The notes under the pieces were generated by a model, which was given only the letters and a program-made list of their open reading frames with translations, did no database searches and was not told the DNA's origin. From Macrostomum lignano (taxonomy: Eukaryota), in NCBI GenBank assembly GCA_002269645.1, contig NIVC01003286.1, positions 1-64,000 on the forward strand: DNA of 64,000 nt, given 5' to 3'. Position 1 is the first letter of the stretch, and each line of letters begins with the position of its first letter. A program made the translations under genes and the position numbers. This document shows positions 873 through 45,300 of this stretch, in pieces.

Positions 873-3800
873 ATGCAGCTCTTTCAGTTGCGAGTTTCTG
901 CAGCGTTGGCTCTGCTGCTCTGCTCGCTGGCAGCCGGCCGCCAGGTCTCCCAGTGCGCTCCCGCTGACTCTCCGCGGCTCCGCTTCGTGGCGCAGCTCAG
1001 CGTGAACGGCTGCGCGCTGTTCGTGCACGACACGGGCGAGCGAGCGACGGTCCGCACTTGGCAGTCGAGCCGCTCATGTGCGTGACGGACAGCCTGAGAG
1101 GCATTGTTCCCCGATTCGACTTCATCACACAGCAGCTGTACTTCAGCGTCCTGTATTGATGAAGGATTCTGGAATGCTCGCAGAGGCTCAGCGTCAACTA
1201 CGGCATCTGTCACCGAGGTCTGTGAGCTTCGCCACGGTGACCAACATCAGCGTCTCAGCCGACAGCCGCTCATCGGTTCGGGTTTTGGGCTTCCCGTGGA
1301 CTCCAAATGAGTCAGTAGCCACTCTGAGACTCGGCTTCGGAGAGAAGATCACATATGAAGCCCTAAATCTACGAGCAAGCATGCTGGGACTGGCGAATAT
1401 CGACCAATTGACCAAAGTTTTTCTGTTACCAAACACTCATATAAGCAGACGAAATAAAATTGAAAATTCAACAATCGAGACTCTAAAAAATGTAAAACTC
1501 TCAGCTACTCTTCTGTCGAATGGCTGTTTCCATGAGGTTCAGAGCCGCATCATGCTGCAAAACGACAGCTTCATCGAAGTCGGCTTGTACAGGAAAAAAT
1601 TCTTACCCGTGTGCCAACAGCTGCGGTTCAGTCGGTACGTCAAACTCGAGAACTGCTCTGTCCGAGTGCACCAGAGACTCGACATCAAGGGCCACTTCCT
1701 CATTGAGCCTCTGCTGTGCCACAACATCTCCAGCTTGAGCAGCGAGTCAGTCAGGTATGACTACAGCCGAGACATGCACTACCTGAAGCTGGATCTAGTG
1801 CTGCAAGATGAGGCCACACGCGATTCTGTGAGGACTCAGTTGGCCGACTTGTCGCCTCGCTCGGTCGACTTCATGCGGCTGTGGACTGCTGAGAGATCAG
1901 TGAGCTCTTCGTTGAGTGCTCGGTTTGAGGTCGGTCCGCTGATGGCGTCGACAGACTGGAGGTCCGCTCAGCTGCGGCTGCTCTGCGGAAACTGGACGGA
2001 GTGCCGCGATCTCAGGTTGGCTGACATTTTCTAAGACATGTGGCAGAAGGTCTGACAATTCGTTCACCGTAATCAAAAACTTTAGTGCTGCTTTTGAGCT
2101 GCTCTTTTCTGGACTGCTTCTTACAGCTTTAGGGAGACAAAAATACTTTTTTAGCATGAGTTTGGAAGCAGAGGATATTTGATTAGGTAAGTTTTAGCTG
2201 GCTCGAATTCCTGACGTAAATATCGCATAAGCACACATTGCACAGTTGTAAAGTTTATACGAGCGTAAAATAATTGAATGTCTGCGGCATCACTACATTC
2301 TAATATCATATACCAGGCATTATTGGCTTTAAAAACTTGCTCTGACTTTTCTGTTTCATTCCTTCGTAGCACAGTGCCGTTAAAAAAGTAATTGACGACT
2401 TCCAGGGCTGCTGTGCTGGCGGAGCCCGCTGACCTGTGGCGACACGTGCAGTGGCGGGTGACGTCGCTGGTTGCTGAGCAGTGCCTTTCCAAGTACAGCC
2501 AAATCACTTCATCATGGAGAATGAAAGCGCTTGTAAGCGAGAGCTGCTACAGTCTGAAGTCCTGCGCCAGGCTGCAATGCGCCTCTGCTCAACGCACAGC
2601 GAACTCTTCCAGTGCGGTTCAACTGCAGCCAGACGGTCGCTGCTTCGTGAAGATTCAGCAGCGACTTACTGGCAGAGTGAGTTTCCAACGAAACTGGACT
2701 GAGTACGAGACTGGGTTCGGTGACGGCACTGACTTCTGGATCGGTGAGCGGCAGTTTTGAGTCAACTAATGTTGTGTGACGAGAGAGGTAGCAGATTTTG
2801 TGAATCTTATATTGAAATGCTAGTTGACTCATAAGCTTTCAAATGACAAAAGATGAATTGAAAGGTTAGCTTCTCGGCTAATTAAAGGAATGTTAACTTT
2901 CAGTTGCGCCATGACTGCAATGCTCTACATTGACCTTTCCCGCCTTATTGGCGTTTCGGGCTCTCGGCTGGCTTCAGTGAGTCAGGAGGCTACTGTCATT
3001 ATTTTCAACGAGCTCACCAAAAGATATTGATGAGATTCTCTAGTCTCAGGAAGTTTGGGATAATTTGCTCTAGTCTGTCTTTTACACGGCCAGGACCCCT
3101 AATAGCAAAAATAGTGTGTTTCAGTTAGCAAAAAAGTTTATCCAGGAGTTGTCAATGAAAAGGATTTGGACTCTCCATCCAGACAACAAAATTTTCGAAA
3201 AATAGAAGTCCCAAAACTAATCTGACGCGAAAAGCAGTAGAAAGCAGTTTAGTCCATTACCAGCTGTTCGAACAAAAAACTTGGGCTTGCTGTGTTGGCC
3301 ATTACAGTGCATTTGCTGAAATGAAGCAGCACCAGCCAGAGCAGCAACAAACTTCATTGTGCATTCCCAAGTTCGGCACTGTAGCACTCCTAGACTCCTA
3401 GGCATTACCCTGGACCGTACGCTCAGCTTTAACGCGCACGTCAACGACATCTGCAGCAGAGTCCTGTCCCGCTGCCGCATGCTGTCCTGCCTCGCGGCTC
3501 GGGACTGGGGTTGGCGCAAGGAGCGCCTTCGCGGCGTCTACCTGGCTATGCAGCAGAGCCTTCTTAACTACGCGGCCCCGGCTTGGCAACCTTGGCTTTC
3601 CAGCTCCTCCTTCGAACGCCTTGAGCGCGCGCAAAACCAGGCCCTCAGAATCGTCACGGGCTTGCACCGCTCGGCGCCGCTTGACGCTGTGCACCTGGAG
3701 GCCGGCATCGGCAGCTACAGGAACACCAGCGACCGCCTTTGCCTCATCGCCAGGGAACGCGCGCTCAGGCTGCCCAACGACCATCCTCGCGCCATCGCCC

Positions 3801-11400: not shown

Positions 11401-13116
11401 GCCGCTTCGTAGGCTGCAATAATGCAACCTGTCAGCGTCTCAGCCATATGATCCACATCCTCGCAGGTCTCAATCGGACGTAAGTCCGTGAGTTCCTGCA
11501 GGTGCAGATCAAGGGCAGCCTTGTAGGCCGCCCAATCAGTGTTGCGGATATTGCGCCTCCAAGTGATCAGAGACTGGGTTTTAGTGTCCGCGATATTAAA
11601 GGCGATAAAGCAGTGGTCAGACAGGGAGGGCTCGTCAGACCAGACTCTCCACTCCTTAACTCTGTCAAAGAGTCTTGGGGTAACAAGTGTGGCGTCAAGG
11701 ACCTCAGTCCATCTGCCATTGTTAAAGGTAGGAGTGCTACCGCGGTTGCAGAGCATGAGGTTTGTGTTAAAGATAAGGGCCAGAAGCTCCTCCCCTCTAG
11801 TATTGGTGTCTTTGCTGCCCCAGTGCTTGTGGTGCGCGTTGAGGTCGCCCCCTAAGCACAGCTCAGCGTTCTGGGACTCGCAGTACTGCGCAAGGCGCAG
11901 TAGACTCTGGGGAGCAGGGTCTCTGTCGCCAGGGATGTAAATCGAGGCAACAAGACACGTACGCGGAGTGAGATGATTAGATTGGATGACACAGAGGTCT
12001 CAATCAGAGAGATCAGTCCTCAGCCAAGCCTGGAGATGGCTGGCAGCGAGGATAGCCGCTCTAGGGCGGCTGTTCCCCGGGCAACACACATAAAAGTCAG
12101 AGTAGCCAGAGGGAATGTTGAGCAACTTACCGTTGCGCATCCAGGGTTCTTGGATCAGGATGAGGCCTGGCCTGTACAGCTCAGCAATCTTCATCAGATT
12201 TACTGACGCAGATACGTAATGCTGTAGATTTATTTGCAGACAGAATGTCGCTCCTTTGGCAGCGTGGAGCTTAGTCATACTGTATTAAATGCAATTGTCT
12301 GGCTAGAACCCCGGGCCATCAAGGAGACTTGGACAGCAAATCGTCCTCGTCCCAGGCCGTTGGGGCTTAACTGGGAGATGGGATGTGGTCGACGTCCATG
12401 GCCTCCTCACCCCTACCACCCCCCAGCAGAGTCCTCGGGCTCCGATGACAGGATGGAGGGAGCTTCCTCATCTGCATCTTTGCCTTCAGACCCCACCAGG
12501 ATGGCCGAGGAGAGCTCGGATTCCGAAGACCCGGCCTCGTCCTCAACTCCTTCTCCGGCTGGCAGGTTCGGTTCTTGGGGCTTGGCCGGAGCCGTTACCG
12601 CGGTGGCCGAACTGCTGCTAGCAGAGGGGCGAGATGCAGCTTTGGCTTTGGGATCGGCTTGCGCCTTTCCTTGGGCCTTAGACTGCGCCCCGCTCTTGCC
12701 GGAGATGCCGGGGTTGGCAGAAGCCTTCCCTTTGGCAGACTTTCCTCGGCGCATCTTGAGCTTGAGAGCACCCAGCTGGAAAGAGGATCCATTAGGGTAC
12801 CGACTCGCCCAAGCGTTGGAAAGGCCGAGGACAATTAAGTTGCCCGTCTCCCCCCTGCGGACTTTGCGGTGATACACCGGTCCACTAGCAGGGAGGTCGG
12901 GGTTCAGACGCAGTAGGACCCGGCGGATAACGTCAGATCCAGCTGCGGTGCTTTTAGCAGGGACAAACACCACATAGGGTATTGTCTTTGGACGCTGGCC
13001 CTCGCGAAGAAAAAGAGCTCCGCCGAGGTCAGCATCCAAGGAGACCGTCGGCAGCAGCTGGAGCAGCTGCTGAGCGTCCTCCTCACTGCTGGGAGCAATA
13101 AGAACGAATGTGCTAC
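8445..13116 (-). mobile_element. R1/LOA-like non-LTR retrotransposon with RNase H; 5'-truncated within ORF1, frameshifted ORF2
   Basis: ORF1 remnant 12413..13138; ORF2 pieces: APE (12278 down: CLQINLQH, LIQEPW; SDH at the end of the domain in ORF 10473..11756), RT (KSPGPDG, FRPISLTS, QHAFR, FLDIVGAFD; YADD in ORF 8545..10305), RNase H (YTDGSK, HSDSQAAL, WVPGHVGIRGNELAD), CCHC-like CSFC...EHFVSIC. Clade assignment is from motif style, not a phylogeny. Confidence 0.88.
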
Positions 13117-13411: not shown

Positions 13412-16400
13412 TGTGGTGTTCGTGTGGCCAAGCAATCTGAAGTTTCTTTTGGCGGTCGCGTGTATTTTAAAGAATAAAATACTCTATGGTACAAGCATAG
13501 ATAAATGAAATGAATAGTCAGTCTGGGGATACCACATCCCTCCACCTTTAGTAAAATCAGTTTATTGTAGGGAAACGAATTGGCCTCCTCAGTACAGTCT
13601 GTGGTCGGAGTCCACTTCTGCGCATTGTTCTTGGATCACACTGTGGTATTTCGGATGCGTCCCTCTGTTCTCGCTGACTGTCGCTCATTCCTCCTCCACC
13701 AGAAAACGTTACCAGAGCCTCGTCAGATTCTGAGTCTGGGAATATCTTTCTGGCCTTGTTAACGTGGCGCTTCTTGATTGTGCCACTTTTGTTCTCCAGG
13801 ATCAGCAGTCCTCCGACTCGCTTCCTTACGTAGTATTGCTCTGTACCAAAAAAACTATCGTACTTGTTCCTTGCTTCCCTTTCAATCACTACTGTGTCAC
13901 CTGTTTTGATGTCGCAGTCACGAGCGTTCCGATTAGCGTAGTTGGACATTTTTCTTTTGTAGTCGGTGTCTTTATCTTTCTGCTTAATCAAAGGTTCTAT
14001 TGTCTCGTTCATCTGTGGAAGTTTTGTCCACGCGCTTCACCGAAAGAATAGGCTTGCTGGCGCTACGCCTGTTGCTCTCATCGGTGTTGTTCTGTAGGCG
14101 TGCAAGAAGATTTGCAACTCCTCTTCAAAACTTGATCCATTCAAAATTCTGGATCTTCTGATGACTTTGTTCAATGTTTCATTGAATCTTTCCACCTCCC
14201 CATTTGCTGCTGGGTGACGCGGAATTATCCGTGAGTGAATGACGCCTTGACTGTTAAGGTATTCGTCAACGACTTTCGAACAGAAATTTGTTCCGTTGTC
14301 TGAGACGAGTTCTTTCATTGGTCCAAATAGTGAAGTCACTTTCTTTAGAATTCGCACTACGTCGCTCGCTTTTGTGCGCTTCATGATGAACACTAGAGGA
14401 AATCTCGAGTGGTAGTCGATGAAAACTAGCAGTTTGCTACCATTCGGAAGTGGTCCTTTGAAGTCCATTGCCACATTGTCCCACGGCTTATCCGGAATTT
14501 GCGTTGGCACAGTTGGGATCCGACTTCCTTTTTTCGTTGTGTGGATGCACAAATTGCATTTCTTGCAAAAGATCTTCACGTCTTTGCTTATACCGGGCCA
14601 AAATACGGTACTTCGCAGTCGTTCTTTGGCTTTGGAAATGCCTTGATGTCTTTCATGGGCAATTAACAGAGCTTTTTGTCGCAGACTCTTCGGCAGGACA
14701 ATGCGGTCTTCGTACAGGAGAATTCAATTCTGCTCCGACAGTTTATTTCTTTCTGCAAATAGTTTGTTGTGCTTTTTCCATGTTCCTCCTGATACTATTG
14801 ATTCCAGTGCCTCGACAATTTCATCATCAATCGCAGAATCTTTTCGGATCTGCTCTAAGCTCAGGGCTGTGCTTACTGCGCTTTCAAGTTTGCTGTTAAT
14901 GAATGCGATGTCGTGTCGATTGCAGAGTGTGTCGTTTGGTGTTTTCACCGGTTGTCTCGACAAAATATCTGCCTCGTTGGTGTCGCCTGGTTCATATTTT
15001 ATCTTAAAGTTGAATGGTTGCAATCTCATTTCCCAACGCTCAATTCTTGGTGGTGGTTTTGAGTTCGATGCAAAACATCCGACTAGAGGTTTATGATCCG
15101 TTATTACCGTAAATTCGGCTGCTCCTTTGAGAAAGTGAGAAAATTTCTCGCATCCCCATTTAATTGCCAATGCTTCTCGCTCGATTTGACTGTATCGAGT
15201 CTCCACGTCTGTGAGAATTCTACTGGCATAGCAAACTGGCTGTAGATTTCCATCTTTCTGCCGCTGAACCAAGATCGCACCAAGACCGACAGGACTAGCG
15301 TCTACTCGCAGCTGTGTTTCTCGCCCATTGCCAAAGTACGCGAGCGTTTCCGTTGAGCTAATCGCTGCTTTGATGCTGTTGAAAGAAGTTTCTTGTTCTG
15401 GACCCCATTCCCAGGTCTTTCCTTTCTTTGTGAGGTCATTCAGAGGCTTCGACAAGGTTGCTAGGTTTGGTACGAATCGAGCAACAAATTGTGCTAGACC
15501 AAGAAACGATTTAACTTCACTTGGACTGCACGGTGGTTTGAACATTTGAATAGCCTCCGTTTTCTTCTCGTTGATGGTTATTACCTTTCTCGGTTAGAAT
15601 AAATCCCATAAAAGTAGCTCTACTCATTCCAAATTTGCATTTTTCCTTTCCAACGGTCGTGCCGTTCTCCACGAGCCTTGCTAAGACCTGCTTTAGCCTG
15701 TTGTTGTGTTCCTTGACGTCCTTTCCATACACAATTATATCATCCTAGATATTTAGTAGCCTATGTAAACCAGCCAAAACTTTTTTCATGTAGGCTTGAA
15801 GATAGAATGACGAGTTGACCTAACCCATCGGCAATCGTTTGTACCTGTATAGCGGTTGTCCAGGGATTCCTGTTGAGAACGTTGTCAGATGTCTTGATTC
15901 ACTGTCCAGTTCAATTTGATGGAACATTTTCTTGCCATCAATGTAGCTGAAGCAGCTTGCTTCTCCCATATTGGTGAGCTGATCATCCAGAGATGGATAG
16001 GAAATTGTAGCTTTTCCGTTGCCTCGTTCAAATTTCGTAAGTCAACGGTCAGTCGTACCTTACCAGTCTTTCCTTTGGGACGACAACTAGCCGCGAAAGC
16101 CATGCACTGGGACCATCAACTTTCTCTATGATTCCTGAGTTTTCCTGCTCTTCCAGTTCTTGTAGGAGTGCTTCTCTGAGATGGGCAGCTACTCTTGTTA
16201 TCGATTGTGATATCGGCGTGCTTCCTTCCTTCAGAGCAATGGTCACTGCTGGCTGCGTGGTCAATCTACCAACTCCCTGAAATACCTCCTGATGATCTTT
16301 CAGAATTCGTTCGATTTCTTCGTTCTTCTTCTCAATCTGATTGATCATTATCTGCAGCAAATTCAAATCGATGCTGTCTTGACATCAGAGTATTGTCTCA

Positions 16401-19920: not shown

Positions 19921-21681
19921 TGAAACTTGGAGGTGAAACTTGGGTTGCAATTGGGTTAAAATTCACCATACTTGTAAATTCTAAAAATACACTTGTAGAT
20001 GATGCAAACCTGTTTTTTGAAGTATAGAATGATCATTAGCTGTTTTCGTGATATTACTGGTATCAAGAAAGGTAGCGAATGACGCATGCTATTTTGAAAT
20101 TTATATTCGTATTTTTATCTTACTACTCTTAGTAGTCTGCTAGGTTTGGACATATCTACACATCTGGCCTAAGCTGTTCTGTCTCATGTCCTGTCTACAA
20201 GAATTTAGTCGTCAGTTCTCTGGAACCTCAAAAATATTGAGCGATTCTGCCAGAAGGTCGGAATTGATCCATCAGCACCAGTGAATTGAATAATCCACTT
20301 TGCGTCAATCAGCACTGCGTCTCGGTGTGTCGTTGCCAAGCCTCCCTATTTTATCACAACGCCAACCGCATGTGTCTGCAACAGCTCTGGCTTTGTTGAT
20401 AACTGGAATTTACACTGGCGGAGCTTCTGGATCTTCAACAGTGCCACAAACAGACTATGGATGCCGTCGTCTGTGACGTCTCAGATCAAGAGTCAACGGA
20501 GGGCAAACCCGAACTGCTTGGTGTCCTTACCTACTTGTAGTATCTCAAGCATTCGGACATCATCCAGAAACCGTTGGTACCTTCAGCCGACTGCACCAGT
20601 AGACTATGTACGTTTTGCTTGAAGTTGCACAGCGAAATAAATGCATTTTGTGCATTGTTTCGAACGCGAGATCCTCTCTGCGTAAGAATTCAGTTTACAC
20701 TTGATGAAACTGAAAAACTTGCCAATTAATTATTTGCTAGATGGATAACAATGCATTCAAAATTACTTATAAGAATATAATTCAATAATATGACACGTGC
20801 TTAGTTTTACTCCTCATGAATTAAATAGTTTTAATAGCTTCAGAAATGAAAAAGATATGATGAAAAATCTCAATTAGGTGTAGCTGCTGGTTGCAACCCG
20901 TCGAAGAAGCCGAAGGCATCAGCGTGAAGGCTACATGCAATTACCTGGGAGTCTGGCTAAGGTTGTCCAGCAGTTGAGATTTGCCCGTTATTGAAGCTTG
21001 ATAATAAAAATGCTGACATGGCGCAGTGCAGATTGGCGCACGAAGGTGAATGAATACAACAACGCTAATGGTAGGAATCAGACAAAAACTATGAAAAAAA
21101 GGGAAAAAACTCAGAGGGCGAATTCTACTCTTGGTAATTTTACGGGTAAACTCGGGTGTCTCCAGAAATCTGTATTACATAAAATTATCAAGAACATCTT
21201 AGCACTTCAAGATAGCACTTCATGAGCTGCAGATGAAAGAACGACCCAAGCTAAAAAACACCGTATTGAAGCTTAGACGAAGTTCGCATTGAAGACTGCA
21301 ACAACAAAGCACCAGAACTTCCGAAAGGTCATCCAGCACAAACAGAATGTCCTGCAGCAAGGCAGGTAAAATTGATGCGCTGCATGGCGCAAAGGTTGCG
21401 AGTGACGCATGCAGTACCTCGGGATTCCAGACACTGTCTGGCAGAGATAAAAGTGCATTTAGTCACGAGATTCTGGCCAACCGAATCCCCAGCTGAGGCA
21501 AACAGTCTGATGCAAATGGCAAACCGCGTGACGCGTCTGGAATGCCAAGTGCAGCCTGCAGTCACGTTAAATTTATCCCATGGGCAGGGAATGCTTCTTC
21601 TCTATATAAATGCAGCCATTTTACAGGATGCAGCTGCAATCCCAGATTACCGATACAACAACGAAAGGTGAACTTGACTCG

Positions 21682-24600
21682 ATGCAGCTCTTTCAGTTGC
21701 GAGTTTCTGCAGCGTTGGCTCTGCTGCTCTGCTCGCTGGCAGCCGGCCAGGTCTCCCAGTGCGCTCCCGCTGACTCTCCGCGGCTCCGCTTCGTGGCGCA
21801 GCTCAGCGTGAACGGCTGCGCGCTGTTCGTGCACGACACGGGAGCGAGCGACGGTCCGCACTTGGAAGTCGAGCCGCTCATGTGCGTGACGGACAGCCTG
21901 AGAGGCATTGTTCCCCGATTCGACTTCATCACACAGCAGCTGTACTTCAGCGTTCCTGTATTGATGAAGGATGCTGGGATGCTCGCAGAGGCTCAGCGTC
22001 AACTGCAGCATCTGTCACCGAGGTCTGTGAGCTTCGCCACGGTGACCAACATCAGCGTCTCAGCCGACACCCGCTCATCGGTTCGGGCTTTGGGCTTCCT
22101 GTGGACTCCGGATGAGTCAGTAGCCACTCTGAGACTCGGATTGGCAGAGAAGAACACATATGAAACTCTACATCCCGAAAACATAGTTCTAAGACTTCTG
22201 AATATCGACTCAATGAGAACCTTACTAATTCAAAGTACCCAGACGCGGATCGTCGAGAAAAAAAATGAAAGTTCAATAATCGAGACTCTAAACAATGTAA
22301 AACTCTCAGCTACTCTTCTGTCGAATGGTTGTTTCCATGACATTCAGAGCCGCATCATGCTGCAAAACGACAGCTTCATCGAAGTCGGCTTGTACAGGAA
22401 AAAATTCTTACCCGTGTGCCGACAGCTGCGGTTCAGTCGGTACGTCAAACTCGAGAACTGCTCTGCCCGAGTGCACCAGAGACTCGACATCAAGGGCCAC
22501 TTCCTCATCGAGCCTTTGCTGTGCCACAACATCTCCAGCTTGAGAAGCGAGTCAGTCAGGTATGACTACAGCCGAGACATGCACTACCTGAAGCTGGATC
22601 TGGTGCTGCAAGATGAGGCCACACGCGATGCTGTGAGGACTCAGTTGGCCGACTTGTCGCCTCGCTCGGTCGATTTCATGCGGCTGTGGACTGCTGAGAG
22701 ATCGGTGAGCTCTTCGTTGAGTGCTCGGTTCGAGGTCGGTCCGCTGATGGCGTCGGCAGACTGGAGGTCCACTCAGCTGCGGCTGCTCTGCGGAAACTGG
22801 ACGGAGTGCCGCGATCTCAGGTTGGCTGACATTTTTTTAGCAAGGTTTGAGGTTTCATACACGTAAAGTCTAAATTAGTTTTTATCCTTTTTTTTGCTTT
22901 AGACTCAACAGATTTTGATGTTAGCGCGAATACGAGCTAAAACTAAGGTAGCAGTTGGGTGCAGAGTAGGTTTGAATGGATACGTTTCTGATGGCCCGAA
23001 TTCCTGACCTTATAAATGCGGTAGCACGCATGGCAAAAGTGCTAAAATTTACATGATAATTATATGCTGGCGGCATCGTTACTCTACTACTTTATACCAA
23101 GACAGTGAAAAGACGTGAATGAAGTAAATGTAGTCTTCAAGGGTGGGAAGATTCGATATTTGCTTTTTACTTTGCTGTTTGGTAGGGGCTTTGATCTAAT
23201 GCATTTTCAAACAGTATTGACAAACAAGCTGTTGAAACCCGCGGATTTTGAACCGGGGAATTCCAATCCCCGAAACTCTTTTTGCATGCATTCTAAAATC
23301 TGAGGTCATACTCAAACAAAAACTTGTTAATAGTTGGGATAGAGGTGAACATAAAATAAAGTACATTCTTGTGGTTTTAAAATTATATAGGATTTGAGGC
23401 AAACATTGATACTGCGCAGAATGTCAGGCAATGTCTATCTGACTCTAAACTCTGACCTCTTGCCTCTGCCTCTCCCTACGTGCCTTGGATCCTTTGAAAC
23501 TTCCATCTTCTTTTCTGTTTTCTTTTATTCTCTCTCCTCTCTCCTCTCTCCCCTCTTCTCTCGTCTCTTCCCTCTCCTCTCTATTCTTTTCTCTCTCCTC
23601 TCATCTCTTTTTCTCGTGTTTCTGTTCTCTTATCTCTCCTTTCCCTCTTTTATCTCTTCTGATTTCTCTCTGCTCTATCTCTCTCTTATCTCTCCTTTCA
23701 TATCTCTGCTCTCTGCTCTCCCATCTCTTCTCCTTTCGACTATTTCCTCTCTTCATTCTCCCTTTTCTCTCATCTCTCTCCCTTCCCCTCTTTCCCCTGG
23801 TTCTTGATTCTCTACCCTCCTCTCTCCTCACTCACTTCTATCTCACTTTGTCTCACCTCTCCTGTCTCATCTCTTCTCTCTTCTCTCCTATCTCTCCTCC
23901 TTTCTCTCTATTTTTCCATCTCTAATCTGTTCACTCTCGTCTCTGCTCTGCACTCTTCTTTCCCCACTTTTGACTGCTATTTTTCCTTTCTTCTCTTTTA
24001 TTCTCTTCCCTCTTCTATACTCTCTCTCTAAAAAGCAGCCTAACTTTAAAAGCGCACATCGCTATTCAGGATTAACCTTTAAACTTGAAATTTCACACGA
24101 TTGTGTCAAAAGTTCAAGATTATTGTCTGTGTCAAATTTAAAGAGGATTAATAAAAGTAGAGCGGCGCTAAGGAGGATTTAGTGAAAAATCCTGCTTTTC
24201 TAGCAGTTTTTTGGTTTTTTAAGTAGAAAGACTTAGACTTAGGAAATTTTAAGGTAAGCCTAAGACATTTTCCGTAGTGAGTTCAGGATGGGTGCAAAAG
24301 TTGGTTTGATTTGCTTGAGCGGTTTGGGCGTCCATAGCGATCAAAATTGTACACAGACAGCCACACAGACACACAGACAGACACACAGAGAGACACACAG
24401 ACAGACACAGACAGAGTTTTGATTTTTATAGTGATGTAACCGCCCTTGTCGCCGGTCCGCTCCGATTGAGAGACGAACGCTTGGCTAGAGGGGGCAATGA
24501 CCGTAGGCTGCCTATGACCGGGCAATGACCTGACGGACCTCCAGCACCAGACTGTCCCGCCCACATGATTGATAGCTTTGGTAGCGCTTTGTGACAAGAG

Positions 24601-27600: not shown

Positions 27601-29379
27601 TTTTTTAAAAACGAAACCCAAATTTTGAGAGATATGCCTCTCAAAATTGCACGAAAAAGTCCTAGCTCGTACTTTTAGAGTGCACGTAGCCAGCCCTGTC
27701 AAAAGTGAATTTTAGCTATCGCTTGTCCTTCTCGCTGCGGTACGGGCTAAGTTAAAAAGCCAATTTTTCGACGTGAAAAACACGTTTCTGTACTTTTAGC
27801 CCCGAAGATGAAGTGCAAAAATTAAGTTAACATCATTTCAGAGTTTGAATGCCCGCCGCTCGCTAAGCGCTGCCATATTTTCCCGCCGCTAAATTAAGAT
27901 CATAGTTTTTTAAAATGTCTAAAAACGCGTTGTCATGGCAATCAAACAGTGCTTTTGTCTTTGACGCATTTAAGCTAAAAACCGTTTGTAAATCGATCAT
28001 GCCATTTAAAAATGCCAACGTTTAAAATTTGACAAAGTTGACTTGTGATGTGTCAATCTGTTGCACGTCTTACCAGGGACAATTTTTTTTCAGAAAGACA
28101 TGGCATTTCTGGCTCAATCGTCAAACAATAGTATTTTGCGTACATACGTAGTGAGATTTTGAATTCATTCGAAATAGTTGTTTTAAATGCGTGCTCATTT
28201 GTATTTTTGTTCTTTTCATTCCTTCGTAGCCCTGTGCCGTTTAAACAAGTAATTGACGACTTCCAGGACTGCTGTGCTGGCGGAGCCCGCTGACCTGTGG
28301 CGACACGTGCAGTGGCGGGTGACATCGCTGGTTGCTGAGCAGTGCCTCTCCAAGTCCAGCCAAATCACTTCATCATGGAGAATGAAACCGCCTGTAAGCG
28401 ACAGCTGCTACAGTGTGAAGTCCTGCGCCAGGCTGCAATGCGCCTCTGCTCAACGCACAGCGAACTCTTCCAGTGCGGTTCAACTGCAGCCAGACGGTCG
28501 CTGCTTCGTGAAGTTTCAGCAGCGACTTACTGGCAGAGTGAGTTTCCAACGAAACTGGACTGAGTACGAGACTGGGTTCGGTGACGGCACTGACTTCTGG
28601 ATCGGTGAGCGGCTTGTCAATTGGTGTGCGTCAGGAACTGAAGCAGGTCTTATCAACTGCCATGAGAGTGTCATTTAGGCCGTACAATTGATAACGTTCG
28701 TTGGTTGGTGGCTGTGGAAATTTAATTCTTCGAACCGCCCTGCAGCTAAGTGGAAATTTTAGCAAAACTTTTTTTCCTAGCATGCTGAGCTGCATCAATA
28801 GAATTCATTGGCGCCTGAATCCAGACTGCCTGCGCAAGTCAGGCCCAAAATTATGGAAAATATATTTTCATCAATTTTGAGTCACGACTCACCTGACAGC
28901 AGCGGCGACAAGCCGAGCAGAAGTGACTCAGACTCAGCCGCTCTCCTCCCGCAGGCCTCTCCGCCATCCACTCGCTCAGCCAGGGCGGCGCCACCCTCAG
29001 AGTGGAGATGAAGCTGTGGAACGGCTCTGAGCTGCATGCGGAGTACGCGGGATTCCAGGTGGCAGACGCCAGCACTGGGTATCGGATGACGTACCGAGAG
29101 ATGCTGAGGGACAGGTCCAGTGTCAGCTGGGATGCTTTGCAGCTCAGCAAAGGCATGCGGTTCTCCACGATGGACTGGGACAATGACGTATGGGATGCTC
29201 AGTCATGCTCAAACACACTCGGAAATGCAGGTTGGTGGTTTCATTACTGCCGCCACTTCAACCCTAATGGACTTTATCCTTCGCAAGAGAAGGTAGATAT
29301 AATTGGCAATATGGTGTGGTACATTTCTTATAGTAAGAAACTGTCTCTTCGTGAAGTGCGGCTGATGCTACAGATTTGA
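21682..29379 (+). CDS. Secreted fibrinogen-related protein, copy 2 (intact, 633 aa): signal peptide, two tandem unknown domains, FReD
   Basis: Exons 21682-22820 (1139 nt), 28267-28604 (338 nt), 28955-29379 (425 nt); GT-AG introns in phase 2 and phase 1; total 1902 nt open; FReD motifs FQRNWTEYETGFG-FWIGL, FSTMDWDND, GWWF..C...NPNG. Confidence 0.85.
23400..24030. repeat. CT-rich low-complexity tract in intron 1 of copy 2
   Basis: Pyrimidine-rich degenerate (CT)n; its ORFs are S/L/F-rich artefacts. Confidence 0.85.
24432..26657. mobile_element. 2.2-kb solo LTR (or non-coding LTR-type insertion)
   Basis: TG...CA ends with 10-bp terminal inverted repeat TGATGTAACC/GGTTACATCA; 4-bp TSD ATAG at 24428-24431 and 26658-26661; no retroelement ORF inside. 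Confidence 0.8.
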
Positions 29380-30002
29380 GATTATCAACCGCAAAATACC
29401 GATTTTTAAAGTCTCTTTGATGCAAGAGTTTCACTGAATGAAAACACTCGACCGCATAAAAACTAAAAACAATATTTTTGCGAGTTTAAACTTAATAAAC
29501 TCATTTTTATATACTCATACTTTTTTCAACAATATGCTAATCAGAAAAGACAAACCATCATAACGCAGCGCATCTGCGCAACTCAAATACAGAGTTGTTG
29601 TTCGCGACTTTTCCTTCACATTTTTTGCATTCGAATTTCCTACAAATTGCAAGCTGAAAGCCTCAAGTTTGTTGCTACGAGCGTATGAAGCTTTTCTGAA
29701 GTCTTGCTTTTCTGATACTGACTGATAATCCCCTATAGATGCCTGTGATTTGAGCGCATTTTAAATGGATATATACACACGCACATGTGATGAACGGGAG
29801 GGAGGAGACTTCAGGTTGCCTCACCTGGGTTCGTGTACTGAACCTTTAGCGCTACGGTCCTCCAACCTACTCGCGTACGAAGCAAGAGTCGGTTGAGATC
29901 TCGGAACGGCCCAGGCTCGGCTCGGTTGTCGGCTCGGCTTCAAGACGAAGATCGCCACTACATTTATACGCGCAGTCTCAAAGCGTTGACCGGTGAGGGG
30001 CG

Positions 30003-31101
30003 GTGCTGTCTGTTCTATCAGTATTGTGCTGTCTGTTCTATCAGTATTGTACTGTCTGTTCTATCAGTATTGTGCTGTCTGTTCTATCAGTATTGTACTG
30101 TCTGTTCTATCAGTATTGTGCTGTCTGTTCTATCAGTATTGTGCTGTCTGTTCTATCAGTATTGTGCTGTCTGTTCTATCAGTATCATGCTGTCTGTTCT
30201 ATCAGTATTGTGCTGTCTGTTCTATCAGTATTGTGCTGTCTGTTCTATCAGTATTGTGCTGTCTGTTCTATCAGTATTGTGCTGTCTGTTCTATCAGTAT
30301 TGTGCTGTCTGTTCTATCAGTATCATGCTGTCTGTTCTATCAGTATTGTGCTGTCTGTTCTATCAGTATTGTGCTGTCTGTTCTATCAGTATCATGCTGT
30401 CTGTTCTATCAGTATTGTGCTGTCTGTTCTATCAGTATTGTGCTGTCTGTTCTATCAGTATTGTGCTGTGTGTTCTATTAGTATTGTGCTGTCTGTTCTA
30501 TCAGTATTGTGCTGTCTGTTCTATCAGCATTGTGCTGTCTGTTCTATCAGTATTGTGCTGTCTGTTCTATCAGTATTGTACTGTCTGTTCTATCAGTATT
30601 GTGCTGTCTGTTCTATCAGTATTGTGCTGTCTGTTCTATCAGTATTGTGCTGTCTGTTCTATCAGTATTTTACTGTCTGTTCTATCAGTATTGTGCTGTC
30701 TGTTCTATCAGTATTGTGCTGTCTGTTCTGTCAGTATTGTACTGTCTGTTCTATCAGTATTGTACTGTCTGTTCTATCAGTATTGTGCTGTCTGTTCTGT
30801 CAGTATTGTGCTGTCTGTTCTATCAGTATTGTACTGTCTGTTCTATCAGTATTGTGCTGTCTGTTCTATCAGTATTGTACTGTCTGTTCTATCAGTATTG
30901 TGCTGTCTGTTCTATCAGTATTGTGCTGTCTGTTCTATCAGTATTGTGCTGTGTGTTCTATCAGCATTGTGCTGTCTGTTCTATCAGTATTGTGCTGTCT
31001 GTTCTATCAGTATTGTGCTGTCTGTTCCATCAGTATTGTGCTGTCCGTTCTATCAGTATTGTGCTGTCTGTTCTATCAGTATTGTGCTGTCTGTTCTATC
31101 A
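30003..31101. repeat. 23-bp minisatellite, ~48 units (left part of the array split by the Ngaro element)
   Basis: Direct reading; array resumes at 35527. Confidence 0.95.
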
Positions 31102-34100
31102 TTAGTGCTTCCAGCAACAAAGGCAATAAAAACGCGAACTTGGCACAGAAACGAAGCAGGCCTCGGTCAATAAAAAAGTTTTTTGAACTTCAATCTATGA
31201 GTATATTAGGCTTAAAGCAAACTTAACACGAAAAAGAAAAAAAATTCACTGCGAGAAGGCAAAGTGAGCCGCTAGTAGAGCGCGACGGGGGTTTAAAAAC
31301 ACCCCTGCCACCCAAAGGGGGGGGCAGGCGGCGATGTACAATCAACGCGCTGGGCACTAAAGCCGGTTTGTGCGCTTTCGCCGCACAAACCAGTCCATTA
31401 GTGCTTCCAGCAACAAAGGCAATAAAAACGCGAACTTGGCACAGAAACGAAGCAGGTCTCCAAAGCCAAACACAACGGGGGATAAGAGCAGCAGCTAGGC
31501 ATTGGGCAAAAAACAAATCAGCGGGAAGAGCACCGTCAAAAATGAGCACTAAGGGCGGAAGAAATATGCAGAGAAGCCGCAGCAGTGGCAACACCCGAGT
31601 GGGGCAAGTAGCGCTCCACCGCCGAACTCTACCAGTCGCCGATCCGCTGGATCTCCGCCACTGGCAGGCCCATGCGAGCTGCCCAGGTAGCCCCACCTCG
31701 ACGCAGGCTGTGAGCCGAGTAGAGCTTGCCGCCACACCCAGCCCTCTGCAGCTTAGAGTCAAGAAACCGGTCCAAGTCCCGAGCAGCTAGATGGCGCCGC
31801 TGTCCATTACAATCGATGAAGGACCAGAGTGGCGCCTCGGCCATCGCCAGCTTGTTGACACACAGATGTCGGCGAATCGCCACTACCGGGCAGAGCGCGG
31901 GGCAGGCGGGGAACTTCGGAAGCAGGACGCGGTGGACTCGATCTCGGAACTGAATAGTCTTGCCAAAGTCCACGCTTAAGAGGAGGCCGCAACGGTGAGG
32001 TGTCAGATTATGCACCTTCATCCCACTACCCAACTGAGGCGACGATAGAAGGAAATGATGATTTTCGCAGCATCCCCCACCAGGCAGTGATGGTGACCGC
32101 CCAGCAGGCCAGTTGCCGATTGTCGCCCTTGTCAACCAGAGAACAAAGCTTTTGCAGCACCGACGGAGACATTGGTAGCTTCTGGTTGACCTGAAGCCCT
32201 AGCGCTTGCTTGCAGCCCCGCAGCAGATGCTGGGTGAGGGTGTGCTTCGTCAGGTCCTGAGTGCCGTTCAGCCGAAACCACAGTGAAAGCGAGCTGATGT
32301 GACCGCGAACGCTACTGTAGGCTCGCAGGCGCCTGCCCGTGAGGCCAGCCAGGTAGTTTAGCAGCGTGGACACAGTACACCCGGCGGGGTCGAGTCCCTT
32401 GGCTGAGCAGTACGCGCGCCAGGACCGCACGTGTGAGCTGATGGCGCTTTTCGAGCGGGCCGCGTTGGAGGAACCGAGTAGTTCACGGGCTCGGTGGCTG
32501 AGGTGGTCTGGCGCAGTCTGGCGACCTGAAAACGGAGATAAGCGGATGTGGCAGCAGAAAGCGTGTGCCGGGAAGGCGAGCAATTGGTGAGACGCATCAA
32601 TGAGCCATAATAGCGCAGCAAAAATTCAACAACTGACTGCCCTCGTGCAGCCGAGACGCGGCGTCAGCAAAAATTTGAAACGGCCCTGGTACGTGGTAAG
32701 CACGCAGCTGAATGTTCTGACGAATGCAAAGCAGCGCCACCGTCTGCAACAGCCTCATCACCAGAGGGCACTTAGAGACCCCATTGTTGATAATACAGCA
32801 CGCTGCCATATTATCGCAGTAGATGCACAGCCGACAGTTGTGCAGGCGGTCCCGCCACGACAGCAACGCCATCAGAGGCATCACAGCCTCCTTGTAATTG
32901 ATAGGCAGATCCCGAAAAACAGCATCCGCGTCGAGATCCCAATTAACGTACCGCCAGTCACTCACGCCCCCGGCAACCGCAGCACGGCTGCGCCGCCCAC
33001 CAGGCAGGCGTCCGACTCGATCGCGGCATCGAAGTCGCCATTGAACCAGAGAGTCTTCCACCTTTGAGCTAGCAGAGCAGACTTCCACCAGCGCAGCTGA
33101 CTACGCAGGGCCGCATCCATCTCATCTTGCTGACCGACGGCCAAATTTTTAGAGCGCGAAATCAGGTCCTGAAGAAAGGGGCGACCGCATTCGATCACCT
33201 GCGAAGCCCACGCCAGCCTGCCGATGATCTGCTGTAAACTTTGCTTGCTGATGCGATCCTTGGCAGCAGCATCGTCCAGTTGCCCTAAAAGTTTCTCCAC
33301 TTTCTCGTCTGAAAGCCGCTTCAGGCCCTTGACGGTGTCGAGCTCCACACCGAGAAACGTCATCCTTTGCGAAGGCCGCTGACACTTCGTCCAATTCACG
33401 GTGAAGCCCAGTCTGGTCATTAGCGACGTCAACACATTAAAGAAGGCCTCGCACTCGTTTTGCGAACCGCAAAAGGCAAAATCGTCCAGATAGGCCTCAG
33501 TATTGACGAAGCCGCGGTGCACCATCATCAACTTGACCGCCTCGCTGAGATGATAGAAAGCCGTGACGGAAGCAGCAGCACCAAATGGCAGGCGCGTGTC
33601 CACGATGTAGGTGTCGCAAGCATCGCTACCTAGCCGAAACTTCAAAACGGTAAACTTTTGGTCGTCAGGATGGATCCCACATGAACGATAGGCTTCGCTT
33701 AGATCGACCTTGCACATAAAGTAATTCTTCTTAAGCCTCTTAGCAAAGTTCTGGACACAGGTGAAACGCAGTCTCTGCTCGCTCTCGTAAGCGGAATTGA
33801 CAGACTTCCCTTGCGGCCGGCTGCAGTCATGGATTAAGCGAACGCCACCGTTGGACTTCGGCAGCGCACCAAGGGCGCTGACTATGCGAGGTTTGTCACC
33901 AGCAGCACAGAGACGATAACGACCGAGACGAAGCTCGTTAGCAATCTGACGCGCAACCCTGTCATGGTGCTTAAAAACCGATGAGTAGTTTGCCACTTCA
34001 ACCAGCTCGTTGCCATGCATCTGACGATTGGTGATGCGAAAGCCACTAGCAACGCCATCAAGGATAAAAGCCATCCGACCGGGCGGGAGATCTAGCTTGG

Positions 34101-34228
34101 ACAACTCCGCCTGCCACTCGGCCAGATTGAGATCAGAGGATAAAACAGGAGGAATAAAATTCGCGCTATGATCGAGTCAGTGTTGCGGTTTCTCCTCACC
34201 GCTCGATTCGTCGCGGTGGAAGGCTGCC

Positions 34229-35338
34229 TCAGAGTGCGCCAGGCCGCATCATCGGCAGCGATGCAGGAACCGAAAGCTCTTGCGTTCGCACCCGCGTATC
34301 CTGTTGTAGTCGAAGCAAACCAGTTGATTGCGCTTCTGGGCACCACCCCCCGATTGCTGCTTCTGGGGCTTGACTTACTTGACTTAGCTGCAGGGTGGTC
34401 CGTAGACACAGCGGGGAGGCGAGGGTCGCCCATTCCGCTAGCCCCTGAAGGGGATGCTGCTTCTGGGGAGCCATGAGGTACGCCGCAACCAGACTCAGGT
34501 CCGAGCTGTGCGACTCCCACTTGCCATCAGTCGCTTGGCTGAGCCGGCACTCGTCATCAAATCTCATGACACGGCTCTTGTCGAAGCCCAGGTCCAACAA
34601 CTCGCTAATGCGTGCGGTGTACCTGAGATAGTCTCTGAGCTCTGCTACATCCAATCGACCATGCTGATCCAGTCTGACTAGACGCCCGTCAGTCAGCATC
34701 TGAAGCATCACCTGCGCATTGCCCGTCACCCAATCGCCTAACGAACGCGCCTCGACCGCCACTTCTTTAGACTTACTCTGGCTTAGAAGACACTGCCTGC
34801 GCTTGCTGACGAAGTCAACGATTCGGTAGACGCTACTGGTACTTCTCCCTGAGGCTCCCATGTTCTCATGCTGCTGCCCAACTTCATGCTGCACACATCC
34901 AGTTAGGAAATTTAGCAACTCACCCGGTACATCACGTGCCTCAGAACGGCCGACCCGTAGCTGCGCGAACTTGGATTCCAGCTGCGCTTCTTCTTTGCGC
35001 AGCTTCAGCAGACGGATCCGCTTCTCCGCCTCCAGCAGCTGTTCGTCCAGGCCGCCAGCCGCGCCAGACCCACCGTTCTCGACCTGTCGCCGATTTGGGG
35101 GGCTGCCCCCGCTGCTCGCTACCGCCGAGTTCTGCCCTGTAGCTCGCAGAATGGCCTGAACGGTCGTCAGCTCGTCACTCTCGACAGAGATCTCCACGTC
35201 TTGAATATGGGCGCGAAGCCTTTGGACTAGTTTTGTTTTGTTGCCAGAGGTTGGCAAACCAAGCTCCTTTAGTTTCCCTCGCAGGGCTGGCACAGTTGTG
35301 GGGCCGGAATCGGCTGACTGGCTACGGTTGCGGTTCAT
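34229..35338 (-). CDS. Ngaro ORF1 (Gag-like) with N-terminal SAP-like motif; frameshifted by a LINE micro-insertion
   Basis: TVPALRGKLKELGLPTSGNKTKLVQRL fits the SAP motif pattern; removing 34369-34468 restores the frame into CFDYNRIRGC...H.CR*CG..H. Confidence 0.7.
   Translation of the reverse strand: MNRNRSQSADSGPTTVPALRGKLKELGLPTSGNKTKLVQRLRAHIQDVEISVESDELTTVQAILRATGQNSAVASSGGSPPNRRQVENGGSGAAGGLDEQLLEAEKRIRLLKLRKEEAQLESKFAQLRVGRSEARDVPGELLNFLTGCVQHEVGQQHENMGASGRSTSSVYRIVDFVSKRRQCLLSQSKSKEVAVEARSLGDWVTGNAQVMLQMLTDGRLVRLDQHGRLDVAELRDYLRYTARISELLDLGFDKSRVMRFDDECRLSQATDGKWESHSSDLSLVAAYLMAPQKQHPLQGLAEWATLASPLCLRTTLQLSQVSQAPEAAIGGWCPEAQSTGLLRLQQDTRVRTQELSVPASLPMMRPGAL
34369..34454 (-). mobile_element. 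86-bp extreme 3' fragment of an R1/LOA-like LINE
   Basis: Matches 8445-8530 (TTGACT.AGCTGCAGGG...GACACAGCGGG.AGGCG...CGCCCATTCCGCTA.CCCCTGAA); flanked by 14-bp TSD TGCTGCTTCTGGGG at 34355-34368 and 34455-34468. Confidence 0.85.
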
Positions 35339-35526
35339 GACTCAGCAAAAGTTTCCATTTCCAAGTCAAAAAAATTCACTGAGAGAAGGCAAAGTGAGCC
35401 GCAAGTAGAGCGCGACGGGGGTTTAAAAACACCCCTGCAACCCAAAGGGGGGGCAGGCGGCGATGTACAATCAACGCGCTGGGCACTAAAGCCGGTTTGT
35501 GCGCTTTCGCCGCACAAACCAGTCCA

Positions 35527-35722
35527 GTATTGTGCTGTCTGTTCTATCAGTATTGTGCTGTCTGTTCTATCAGTATTGTGCTATCTGTTCTATCAGTATT
35601 GTGCTGTCTGTTCTATCAGTATTGTGCTGTCTGTTCTATCAGTATTGTGCTGTCTGTTCTATCAGTATTGTGCTGTCTGTTCTATCAGTATTGTGCTGTC
35701 TGTTTTTATCAGTTTTTATCAG
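35527..35722. repeat. 23-bp minisatellite, ~8 units (right part of the split array)
   Basis: Direct reading. Confidence 0.9.
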
Positions 35723-42346: not shown

Positions 42347-45300
42347 ATGCAGCTCCTTCAGTTGCGAGTTTCTGCAGCGTTGGCTCTGCTGCTCTGCTCG
42401 CTGGCAGCCGGCCAGGTCTCCCAGTGCGCTCCCGCTGACTCTCCGCGGCTCCGCTTCGTGGCGCAGCTCAGCGTGAACGGCTGCGCGCTGTTCGTGCACG
42501 ACACGGGAGCGAGCGACGGTCCGCACTTGGCAGTCGAGCCGCTCATGTGCGTGACGGACAGCCTGAGAGGCATTGTTCCCCGATTCGACTTCATCACCCA
42601 GCAGCTGTACTTCAGCGTTCCTGTATTGATGAGGGATGCTGGGATGCTCGCAGAGACTCAGCGTCAACTGCAGCATCTGTCACCGAGGTCTGTGAGCTTC
42701 GCCACGGTGACCAACATCAGCGTCTCAGCCGACACCCGCTCATCGGTTTGGGCTTTGGGCTTCCTGTGGACTCCGGATGAGTCAGTAGCCACTCTGAGAC
42801 TCGGCTTCAAAAGGATTGTTGTCAAGACCGATTCAAGTAAAGCTTCAGGTTCAAGAATTTTACAGGAAAGTTTACCTCTCCAGTTTTTTCAATCAGTGTA
42901 TAACCAGCTGAAGCGCAGTGATGACTTTGGAAGCTCACCACAAGAGGCTCTTGAAAAGGTGAAGATATCAGCTTTTATCATTTCAAACGGATCTTGTCAT
43001 GAGGTTCAGAGCCGCGTCATGCTGCAAAACGACAGCTTCATTGATGTCAGCGTGTACAAGCAAAAATTCTTACCCGTGTGCCGACAGCTGCGGTTCACTC
43101 GGTACGTCAAACTCGAGAACTGCTCTGCCCGAGTGCACCAGAGACTCGACATCAAGGGCCACTTCCTCATCGAGCCTCTGCTGTGCCACAACGTCTCCAG
43201 CTTGAGCAGCGAGTTAGTCAGGTATGACTACAGCCGAGACATGCACTACCTAAAGCTGGATCTGGTGCTGCAAGATGAGGCCACACGCGATGCTGTGAGG
43301 ACTCAGTTGGCCGACTTGTCGCCTCGCTCGGTCGACTTCATGCGGCTGTGGACTGCTGAGAGATCGGTGAGCTCTTCGTTGAGTGCTCGGTTCGAGGTCG
43401 GTCCGCTGATGGCGTCGGCAGACTGGAGGTCCGCTCAGCTGCGGCTGCTCTGCGGAACCTTTACGAAGTGCCGCGATCTCAGGTTGGTTGGAATTTTCTG
43501 AGGGGTTTTCAGCTTTTATTGCACCAGATTCAAAAAAGAGTTTACTTTCTAGACTCTCTTTACTTCACAGGACTTCTTGAGTGTTTGCAAGAGTAATACA
43601 AAATCCCTTTTAGTGTCAGCTTGGTTGCTATTGAGCGATCAGATCAGGCTATCAATGCTTTTGTATTGGTTTTTTTTTCTTTTTTAAATTTTTTTGGCGT
43701 TCAAAAATGGATTTGACAATATCCAGGTCTGCTGTGCTGACGGATCCCGCTGACCTGTGGCGACACGTGCAGTGGCGGGTGACGTCGCTGGTTGCTGAGC
43801 AGTGCCACTCCAAGTCCAGCCAAATCACTTCATCATGGAGAATGAAAGCGTCTGAAGGTGCAGTCAGCTGCTCCAGTCTGAAGTCCTGCGTCAGACTGCA
43901 CAGCGCCTCTGCTCCACGCACAGCGGCGTTTCAAATCCTGCCAGACGGTCGCTGCTTCGTGAAGTTTCAGCAGCGACTTACTGGCAGAGTGAGTTTCCAA
44001 CGAAGCTGGACTGAGTACGAGACTGGCTTCGGTGACAGCACTGACTTCTGGATTGGTGAGCGGCGTTTGTGTATCAGCTAATATTGTGTGACGGAGGGTT
44101 GGTAGCAGATCTTGTTAATCTTATGGTGAAATTATGGTTGATTCATGCACTTTCAACTGACGTAATACGGACTGAAAGATTAACTGCCCGGCTAAATAAA
44201 AAAGTTAAGTTGAAATTGCGCCATGATGGCAATCGTCAACACTGGCCTTTTCCGCCTGATTGGCGTTTCGGGTCCTTGTTTTTGGTCCTTGGTTTTTTAT
44301 ACAGCTAGGACTATCAATGCCAAATAGTTTTTTTCAGATGACTAAAATGTCATCCAGGATTCATCAATGAAAAGTATTTGACACTCCGTCCAGACAACGA
44401 AAATGTCGAAAAATGGAAGTCCCAAAGCTACTTTAAAGCATAAGGCAGTAGACAGCGGTTCAGTCCAGCCAGAGCAGCACCAGCCAGAGCAGCACCAGCT
44501 AGAGCAGCACCAGCCAGAGCAGCACCAGCCAGAGCAGCACCAGCCAGAGCAGCACCAGCCAGAGCAGCACCAGCTTCTACGAGTACAACCATCGTTGCAG
44601 TTTTTGCGTATATTTCTATGAAGTTTACATAAAAAACCTTGTTCCCCGACTCAAAACATTAGCTAGTAAATTTTGCGCTGTTCACGTCACGTATAATATT
44701 AATGGCCTCATGAGGCCTTATGATAGATACATGGCGTACTTAAGAAAGGTTAGAACTTATTGACTTATAAAAAAAATCCAAAAAAAATTCCTTTCGTGCG
44801 CGCCCTTCTACGAGATATTTATCTGAGTCGCAGTCAAGTTTCCGAAGCGATGCATTCAGATGACATTTCGCTTCAGTCCTGGCCTGATACAATTAAAACC
44901 CGTCTTGAAGTCTCAGAACAGCCGGCCACTCATCTGGGATATCAGAAGACTTTGAATGGATAATTTAGTCAGTAAACGAATTTAGCTGCACCATCTGCTA
45001 TGGAACGCACATTGTAAAAAATTTATCTCAGGATCCAAATGACGAATCACCTGACAGCAGCGGCGACTAGCCGAGCAGAAGTGACTCAGACTCAGCCGCT
45101 CTCCTCCCGCAGGCCTCTCCGCCATCCACTCGCTCAGCCAGGGCGGCGCCACCCTCAGAGTGGAGATGAAGCTGTGGAACGGCTCTGAGCTGCATGCGGA
45201 GTACGCTGGATTCCAGGTGGGAGGCGCCAGCACTGGGTATCGGATGACGTACCGAGAGATGCTGAGGGACAGGTTAAATGTCAGCTATGTCGCTTTGGAG

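Follow-up and report, generated by a model that had tools for sequence, protein, structure and literature searches.

A 64,000-nt stretch of DNA from Macrostomum lignano (GenBank assembly GCA_002269645.1, contig NIVC01003286.1, positions 1 to 64,000 of the forward strand), referred to here as the window, contains three tandem copies of a gene whose product joins a domain present as a diverged tandem pair to a C-terminal fibrinogen (FBG) lectin domain. The analyses below show the repeated domain to be an undescribed extracellular unit of ~190 residues that is an independent evolutionary unit; we refer to it as the module and to its two copies in the window proteins as units A and B. An earlier note, made from the letters of the window, had described the first exon of the second gene copy as encoding a diverged internal repeat; this observation was confirmed, and the interpretation placed on it was supported with corrected domain boundaries. 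The explanation that we favor overall, with a probability of roughly 60%, is that the genes encode secreted proteins built of modules and a lectin domain, that these have a role in recognition, and that they carry an exonized cassette.

The repeat was described from a single open reading frame (ORF) of the second gene copy:

21610-22866, plus strand: ORF of copy 2, encoding both halves, A and B

Translation of the 21750-22820 interval in the correct frame recovered every motif that had been listed, namely RLRF, CALFVH, EPLMC, RFDF, QLQHLSPRSVSF and TLRL in half A, and QLRF, CSARVH, EPLLC, RYDY, QLADLSPRSVDF and QLRL in half B. Aligned by BLASTP, the two halves were identical at 31 of 103 positions (30%) with E=2e-11, whether composition adjustment was on or off. 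Their Smith-Waterman score was 111, compared with 30.5 +/- 5.0 (maximum 63) for 2000 shuffles (z=16), and hhalign of the paralog profiles of A against B gave a probability of 96.4% (E=1.4e-9). Because these three approaches agree, the similarity of A and B is real and far beyond chance. The self-alignment that the earlier note had set as a check was significant and was reproduced in the paralogs, and the claim of two diverged tandem copies of one domain holds. At the DNA level, comparison of A with B found nothing beyond chance words of 8-14 nt.

In the first round of homolog searching all homologs (20/20) were from M. lignano, with lengths of 520-647 residues and a C-terminal fibrinogen domain, PF00147; the copy 2 product was 95% identical to a partial M. 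lignano protein, BOX15_Mlig006198g1. Searching the window with the best homolog by tblastn located three exons in each of three gene copies, at a spacing of ~20.7 kb. The two-unit exon is present three times, with starts at ~873, 21682 and 42347, and similar ORFs lie near 1078-2034 and 42347-43501. The coding sequence of copy 2 (21682..22820, 28267..28604, 28955..29379) has canonical GT-AG boundaries and splices into an intact ORF of 633 residues, 96% identical to the paralog P0001. The ATG at 21610 was rejected as the start, as it is in frame only in copy 2, by way of a 1-nt deletion in the leader relative to copies 1 and 3; for this reason the start codon was placed at 21682, where the predicted signal peptide has the usual hydrophobic character. 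The resulting features are as follows.

21682..21750, plus strand: start codon and predicted signal peptide MQLFQLRVSAALALLLCSLAAGQ of copy 2 (UniProt models of paralogs start at the same Met; signal peptide judged by inspection)
21760..22413, plus strand: unit A (residues 27-244), containing repeat A of the earlier note (unit hidden Markov model, HMM, on residues 27-242, E=2e-58; unit alignment)
22414..22820, plus strand: unit B, part 1 (residues 245-380), containing repeat B (unit HMM, E=3e-61; ends at the donor AG/GTTGGC)
28267..28360, plus strand: unit B, part 2, carrying helices 2-3, the final strands and the conserved Cys of the tail (TAVLAEPADLWRHVQWRVTSLVAEQC can be aligned to the tail of every other unit; predicted model ordered to ~residue 170)
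28267..28604, plus strand: exon 2 of copy 2, completing unit B, followed by a Cys-rich linker and the first part of FBG (tblastn of P0001; GT-AG; intact spliced ORF)
28955..29379, plus strand: exon 3 of copy 2, with the remaining FBG lectin domain and the stop codon (PF00147 match)
873..2015, plus strand: exon 1 of copy 1, units A and B (tblastn in three frames; exons 2 and 3 at 2406-2743 and ~5475-5891)
42347..43482, plus strand: exon 1 of copy 3, units A and B, intact (exons 2 and 3 at 43727-44055 and 45113-45531; spliced ORF of 627 residues)

This gene model bears on the boundaries that had been proposed for the repeat. The end that the earlier note gave, 22820, is exactly the final base of exon 1, and the exon does carry the repeat, but the length of ~125 residues did not stand: the unit comprises ~190-195 residues, and the shorter figure corresponds to its core. 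Similarly, the repeats lie in exon 1 as proposed, except that unit B is not confined there and crosses the intron into exon 2. A complete unit consists of the core, LRLxC-x5-C, two helices (including an EPxxLFERL-like helical segment), two strands and a Cys-containing tail.

The copies differ in their state and in their introns. DNA alignment of copy 1 exon 1 against copies 2 and 3 revealed two frameshifts, +2 nt at ~1036 (GC in the GCGAGCGAGCG run) and -1 nt at ~1148, because of which copy 1 represents either a pseudogene or assembly errors; a near-identical intact protein, P0002, is encoded elsewhere in the assembly. Intron 1 of copy 2 spans 5.4 kb, compared with ~0.25-0.4 kb in copies 1 and 3, and the introns could not be aligned. 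A stretch of ~400 bp 5' of the start (21269-21681 in copy 2, and its homologs in copies 1 and 3) is kept at 93-97%, and may be a shared promoter and leader, or part of a conversion tract. In addition, an extra exon 3-like fragment at 46602-46916, ~1 kb 3' of copy 3, covers FBG residues ~538-644 at 69% identity to P0001 and represents a partial duplicate.

To place the module among known domains we used 33 non-redundant units, nearly all from one species, as the sample for the Pfam tests, the PDB profile, the alignment, the Cys counts and AlphaFold2. A scan of these units against 24,736 Pfam models (2025 copy) gave no credible match, the best per-unit E value being 0.03 and the hits scattered over unrelated families; Hydrolase_6, at E about 0.1, was dismissed as chance. 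Neither the N-terminal region nor the unit profile matched any PDB sequence. As neither half matched a known Pfam domain, the novelty that the earlier note had attributed to the domain stands.

The distribution of the module was studied with a profile of the N-terminal region, searched by HMMER against 1.84 billion representative proteins. Thirteen clusters were retrieved, and their named members were all from M. lignano, with the exceptions of P0023, which is encoded on an intron-free contig resembling a transcript, in sequencing run SRR30276812, and P0026, which derives from a Joint Genome Institute (JGI) metagenome contig with units A and B both present. Across these 13 clusters, the sequences suggest that the module is found only in this lineage. 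A word-index search with the unit profile returned three M. lignano fragments only, and a search for metagenome loci with the close-paralog alignment found no relatives. A metagenome contig of 1516 nt (L002, JGI metagenome 3300040801) encodes units A and B at 36-45% identity to M. lignano B units, with a frame change that falls at the unit A intron position; because it encodes both units, it points to an uncultured macrostomid-like animal with the identical architecture.

Three architectures were identified among the collected proteins, in which the unit HMM found more than 90 instances:

P0023, P0034 and P0035: six units followed by a C-type lectin domain (CTLD, PF00059)
Window genes, P0013, P0017, P0021, P0022, P0027 and P0028: two units followed by FBG
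P0029: one unit followed by FBG (PF00147)

The six units of P0023 are arranged head to tail and are 190-207 residues each. These data bear on whether the similarity of A and B could be due to chance or composition, or whether the ORF might not be a real gene. The frameshifted state of copy 1 and the abundance of retroelement fragments in the window would be in keeping with such a view, but it is negligible in probability given the z score and E value of the A to B comparison, the many unit instances recognized by one HMM, the canonical splice sites, the intact spliced ORF with its bona fide FBG domain, and the six-unit relative encoded by a transcript-like contig from an independent run.

The relationships among units indicated the order of the duplications. 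Even at identities as low as 25%, the A units of all two-unit proteins had their closest relatives among A units, and the B units theirs among B units. Position by position, the units of P0023 match those of the M. lignano CTLD proteins at 50-60% identity, compared with 25-30% between units inside one protein. Since units at the same position in different proteins are the nearest to one another, the internal duplications are judged to predate the radiation of the paralogs, and for the A/B duplication the sequences place it before the whole two-unit subfamily. The earlier note had likewise held the internal duplication to be older than the gene duplications, and the absence of A/B similarity at the DNA level agrees.

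Exon mapping identified one fixed intron position per unit, directly after C-x5-C-xxL(R). It is occupied in the following units:

P0034: all six units
P0028 and P0017: both units
P0022: unit A
P0021: unit B
Window genes: unit B, between 22820 and 28267

Because the position is fixed, the arrays are judged to have grown by duplication of an exon that begins with the helices of one unit and ends with strand 8 of the unit that follows. The simplest reading of the present-day exon 1 of the window genes, in which unit A has no such intron, is that it represents a fusion of two ancestral exons.

The structure of the module was predicted with AlphaFold2. For unit B with the 33-unit alignment, the model had a predicted local distance difference test (pLDDT) score of 90.3 and a predicted template modeling (pTM) score of 0.82, and the pLDDT of the five models was 88-90. 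The unit is predicted to fold compactly into an alpha/beta domain with 10 strands and 3 helices, ordered to ~residue 170 and followed by a flexible linker. A model of the whole N-terminal region made with 10 close paralogs was poor (pLDDT 49.6) and was set aside.

The predicted fold was compared by Foldseek with the PDB and with a viral library (BFVD). No PDB chain was found at E<=0.001, the best being E=0.076 with template modeling (TM) scores of 0.22 or below. One match was obtained in the viral library, to an uncharacterized protein of Medusavirus stheno T3, a giant virus of amoebae (A0A7S7YF07, E=2.1e-4, probability 1.0, TM 0.55, 169 columns); it is the sole structural match, is itself a predicted structure, and has an identity of 15%. 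Based on the model, the fold of the module may be new. It is, in our estimation, rather unlikely that the module is instead an extracellular alpha/beta domain of known kind in highly diverged form, such as a ferredoxin-like or SEA-like beta-alpha-beta-beta-beta-alpha-beta core to which an N-terminal sheet was added. In its second half the model does show the order beta-alpha-beta(3)-alpha-beta, and the Medusavirus match suggests that relatives exist outside flatworms, but neither the Foldseek comparison with the PDB nor the Pfam, PDB sequence and profile searches produced a credible relative.

Conserved Cys residues gave further information on the module. Of the 33 units, 25 have both members of the first pair (the Cys of NGC and that of EPLxC), 8 have neither, and none retains one alone; the counts for the second pair (LRLxC and a Cys 5-6 residues on) were 22/1/0/10, and the Fisher values for co-occurrence of the Cys are without phylogenetic correction. 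Double losses occurred in unrelated units, namely unit B of P0017, units 1-3 of the CTLD proteins and unit A of P0027. Because the members of each pair are present or lost together, the data support two intradomain disulfides, C18-C39 and C128-C134 in unit B numbering, the first of which agrees with the suggestion of the earlier note that two aligned Cys might be bonded.

Comparison of the three gene copies revealed a short region of unit A, here referred to as the cassette, that differs from all of its surroundings:

22143..22281 (copy 2), 42808-42943 (copy 3) and ~1335-1470 (copy 1), plus strand: hypervariable cassette of unit A, unalignable between paralogs at the DNA level
42837..42896, plus strand: 60-nt GT...AG segment inside the cassette of copy 3, in frame and stop-free, a candidate retained or exonized intron

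Sliding-window identity was 23-57% in the cassette, as opposed to 95-100% in its flanks (the leader and most of exon 1), and blastn of copy 2 against copy 3 left an alignment gap at the cassette. Synonymous divergence (dS) between copies 2 and 3 was 0.009 for codons 1-150, saturated for codons 151-215, 0.055 for codons 216-380, 0.07 for exon 2 and 0.24 for exon 3. This mosaic of dS values points to gene conversion of the flanks and not to uniform divergence. The ratio of non-synonymous to synonymous divergence (dN/dS) was ~1 in all segments.

The cassette of copy 2 contains 87 extra in-frame nucleotides (22177-22263), located exactly at the unit A intron position, where real introns of 84 nt and 96 nt are present in P0017 and P0022, respectively. 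Removal of 42837-42896 from copy 3 produces GFKRIVVKTDSMYNQL, the exact junction of the database protein P0016, and P0005 retains the segment. At least six unrelated versions of the cassette, of 20-65 codons, all have an open frame and lengths that are multiples of three. An ordinary, unannotated intron in the copy 2 cassette was rejected, as no plausible donor is left and every version has an open frame; the lack of a good donor in copy 2 suggests constitutive exonization. The simplest reading of these sequences is that an intron has turned coding, constitutively or alternatively. In this the cassette resembles exitrons: it is an in-frame insert of intron-like length at a conserved intron position, copy 3 keeps GT...AG, and some database proteins contain it where others lack it. 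Unlike exitrons, copy 2 is without a good donor, and the insert is known here from genomic and database protein sequence.

These features could also be accommodated if the module were an inert spacer and the cassette a neutrally drifting exonized intron, with specificity residing wholly in the lectin head, which we regard as possible but on the unlikely side. The insertion of 87 nt exactly at the ancestral intron site, close to the lengths of the real introns, would be expected of such drift, as would saturated dS in the cassette with dN/dS of ~1 elsewhere; the first AlphaFold2 model was also of low confidence across the insert. The frame, however, has stayed open and the length a multiple of three in at least six unrelated cassettes, and outside the cassette the module belongs to the best conserved portions of the gene.

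The lectin head of the window proteins is less unusual than the module. The spliced products of copies 2 and 3 match PF00147 at E=2e-34 (residues 452-631, 119.7 bits) and E=4e-35 (122 bits), respectively, with a cutoff of 22 bits, and the paralogs P0001, P0013 and P0017 match it too. On these matches the window proteins can be assigned to the fibrinogen-related domain (FReD) proteins. The match starts at profile position 35, which indicates that the early A subdomain of FBG is divergent or replaced. The best PDB relatives of this region were the alphaEC domain of fibrinogen-420, ficolin-1 and angiopoietin-2, and the calcium-site motif FSTMDWDND and the Cys pair of the P domain, SCSNTLGNAGWWFHYC (C...GWWF..C), align with fibrinogen-420 and ficolin-1.

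Several known lectin systems resemble the window proteins in part. The fibrinogen-related proteins (FREPs) of the snail Biomphalaria glabrata consist of one or two immunoglobulin superfamily (IgSF) domains and FBG (PMC7588048). Like FREPs, the proteins described here are apparently secreted and carry N-terminal non-lectin domains, singly or as a tandem pair, ahead of a linker and a C-terminal FBG, and they form a multigene family partly in tandem with a variable region within an N-terminal domain. Unlike FREPs, the module is not IgSF: none of the 33 units had an Ig match in Pfam, the predicted fold is alpha/beta and not a beta-sandwich, the Cys spacing is different, and the Fab chains among the Foldseek PDB matches had TM scores of 0.21 or below and were not significant. 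The variability seen here is diversity among germline paralogs, located at a putatively exonized intron, and implies no somatic diversification. The window proteins share a homologous C-terminal FBG with ficolins, angiopoietins, tenascins, FIBCD1 and fibrinogen-420 alphaEC (E=1e-21 to 3e-23 to PDB chains), but the N-termini of those lectins are collagen-like, coiled-coil, EGF/FN3 or transmembrane, and none has the module. No ficolin-type Gly-X-Y run was present in the 633-residue product, nor any collagen match in Pfam. P0023, P0034 and P0035, in which one CTLD ends a long module array, are reminiscent of C-type lectin receptors with repeat stalks, such as selectins with their sushi domains and DC-SIGN with its neck; they differ from these in that the repeat is a globular alpha/beta domain of 190 residues with no relationship to sushi domains or to the heptad repeats of the neck, the lectin is C-terminal, and the proteins are apparently soluble.

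The product comprises a predicted signal peptide, units A and B, a short Cys-rich linker and the C-terminal FBG lectin domain. The combination of a signal peptide, disulfide-braced modules and two alternative lectin heads suggests that these are secreted proteins of glycan recognition; they would be soluble carbohydrate-binding recognition or agglutinating factors, in which the lectin head binds glycan. The module array would serve as a rigid stalk or as a platform for oligomerization, and it may offer a second binding surface that differs between paralogs. Among the window genes and the rest of their clade, read-through and exonization would have turned the ancestral unit A intron into a paralog-specific hypervariable insert on the helical face of that unit, and gene conversion would keep the exon sequence flanking the insert almost identical. 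A further-reaching speculation is that a new fold serves as a diversified recognition surface beside the lectin head, as a flatworm counterpart of the IgSF region of snail FREPs, its variability arising by intron exonization and being kept as a cassette as conversion homogenizes the flanks; we hold this only tentatively and consider it improbable as a whole.

Some other role is conceivable for the family, for instance in mucus, extracellular matrix, adhesion or reproductive secretion in Macrostomum. Fibrinogen-related and C-type lectin domains occur also in matrix and adhesion proteins, and lineage-restricted, fast-evolving tandem families such as this one are typical of reproductive proteins too. 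The FBG-bearing tenascins and angiopoietins were among the best PDB matches, and the M. lignano adhesive protein Mlig-ap1 has a C-type lectin domain, in a paper whose proteins are unrelated to the module family (PMC6410801). Set against these points, Pfam found none of the matrix-type domains EGF, FN3, collagen or VWD beside the module, and the literature found on fibrinogen-related proteins of Macrostomum, flatworms and planarians contains no description of the family. We consider a non-immune role quite unlikely.

Several considerations weigh against the reading of these genes as secreted recognition proteins with an exonized cassette. The function is read from domain architecture, and the signal peptide was recognized by inspection. 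Only 33 sequences, almost all of one species, underlie the predicted structure, and with Foldseek libraries comprising the PDB and viral proteins, a relative in the AlphaFold DB is possible. The dN/dS of ~1 between copies 2 and 3 is equally compatible with diversifying selection, relaxed constraint and recent conversion, and the hypervariable insert may be simply neutral. Lastly, the two frameshifts of copy 1 may reflect partial decay of the array.

The surroundings of the three copies are repetitive. A minisatellite at 30003-31101, 0.6 kb 3' of the copy 2 stop, consists of 47.8 copies of a 23-bp unit with 95% matches, and gives long spurious ORFs in two frames (29893-31226). Within intron 1 of copy 2, a CT-rich low-complexity stretch (23394-23925) is translated as Ser/Leu/Phe-rich pseudo-ORFs, and the second intron of copy 1 contains ORFs with RNase H (3359-4851) that probably mark a retroelement fragment. 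Retroelement fragments also lie between the copies, all on the minus strand:

8545-11756, minus strand: retroelement fragment
14724-15545, minus strand: retroelement fragment
32962-40453, minus strand: retroelement fragment
60568-63996, minus strand: retroelement fragment

Their ORFs have RVT_1 and RNase_H, or RT_RNaseH, integrase and rve (pol of the long terminal repeat type), and one of the pol ORFs has a Pro-rich PDPPHTSA repeat at its end.

Immune recognition in invertebrates relies centrally on fibrinogen-related and C-type lectins, whose partner domains differ by phylum (for instance collagen, IgSF or coiled coil). M. lignano is a free-living flatworm and a genetically tractable regeneration model, and here both kinds of lectin head are joined to one private module of 190 residues. 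What is new is the lineage-restricted domain family; the modular lectin that carries it is of a known kind. The family is well defined, possibly has a new fold, and is ready for a Pfam/InterPro entry and for structure determination. It also offers a compact example of a domain array that has apparently grown by exon duplication around a fixed intron position, and of an intron that appears to have become a hypervariable coding insert. If a role in defense were shown, diversified lectin receptors would extend from molluscs to Platyhelminthes.

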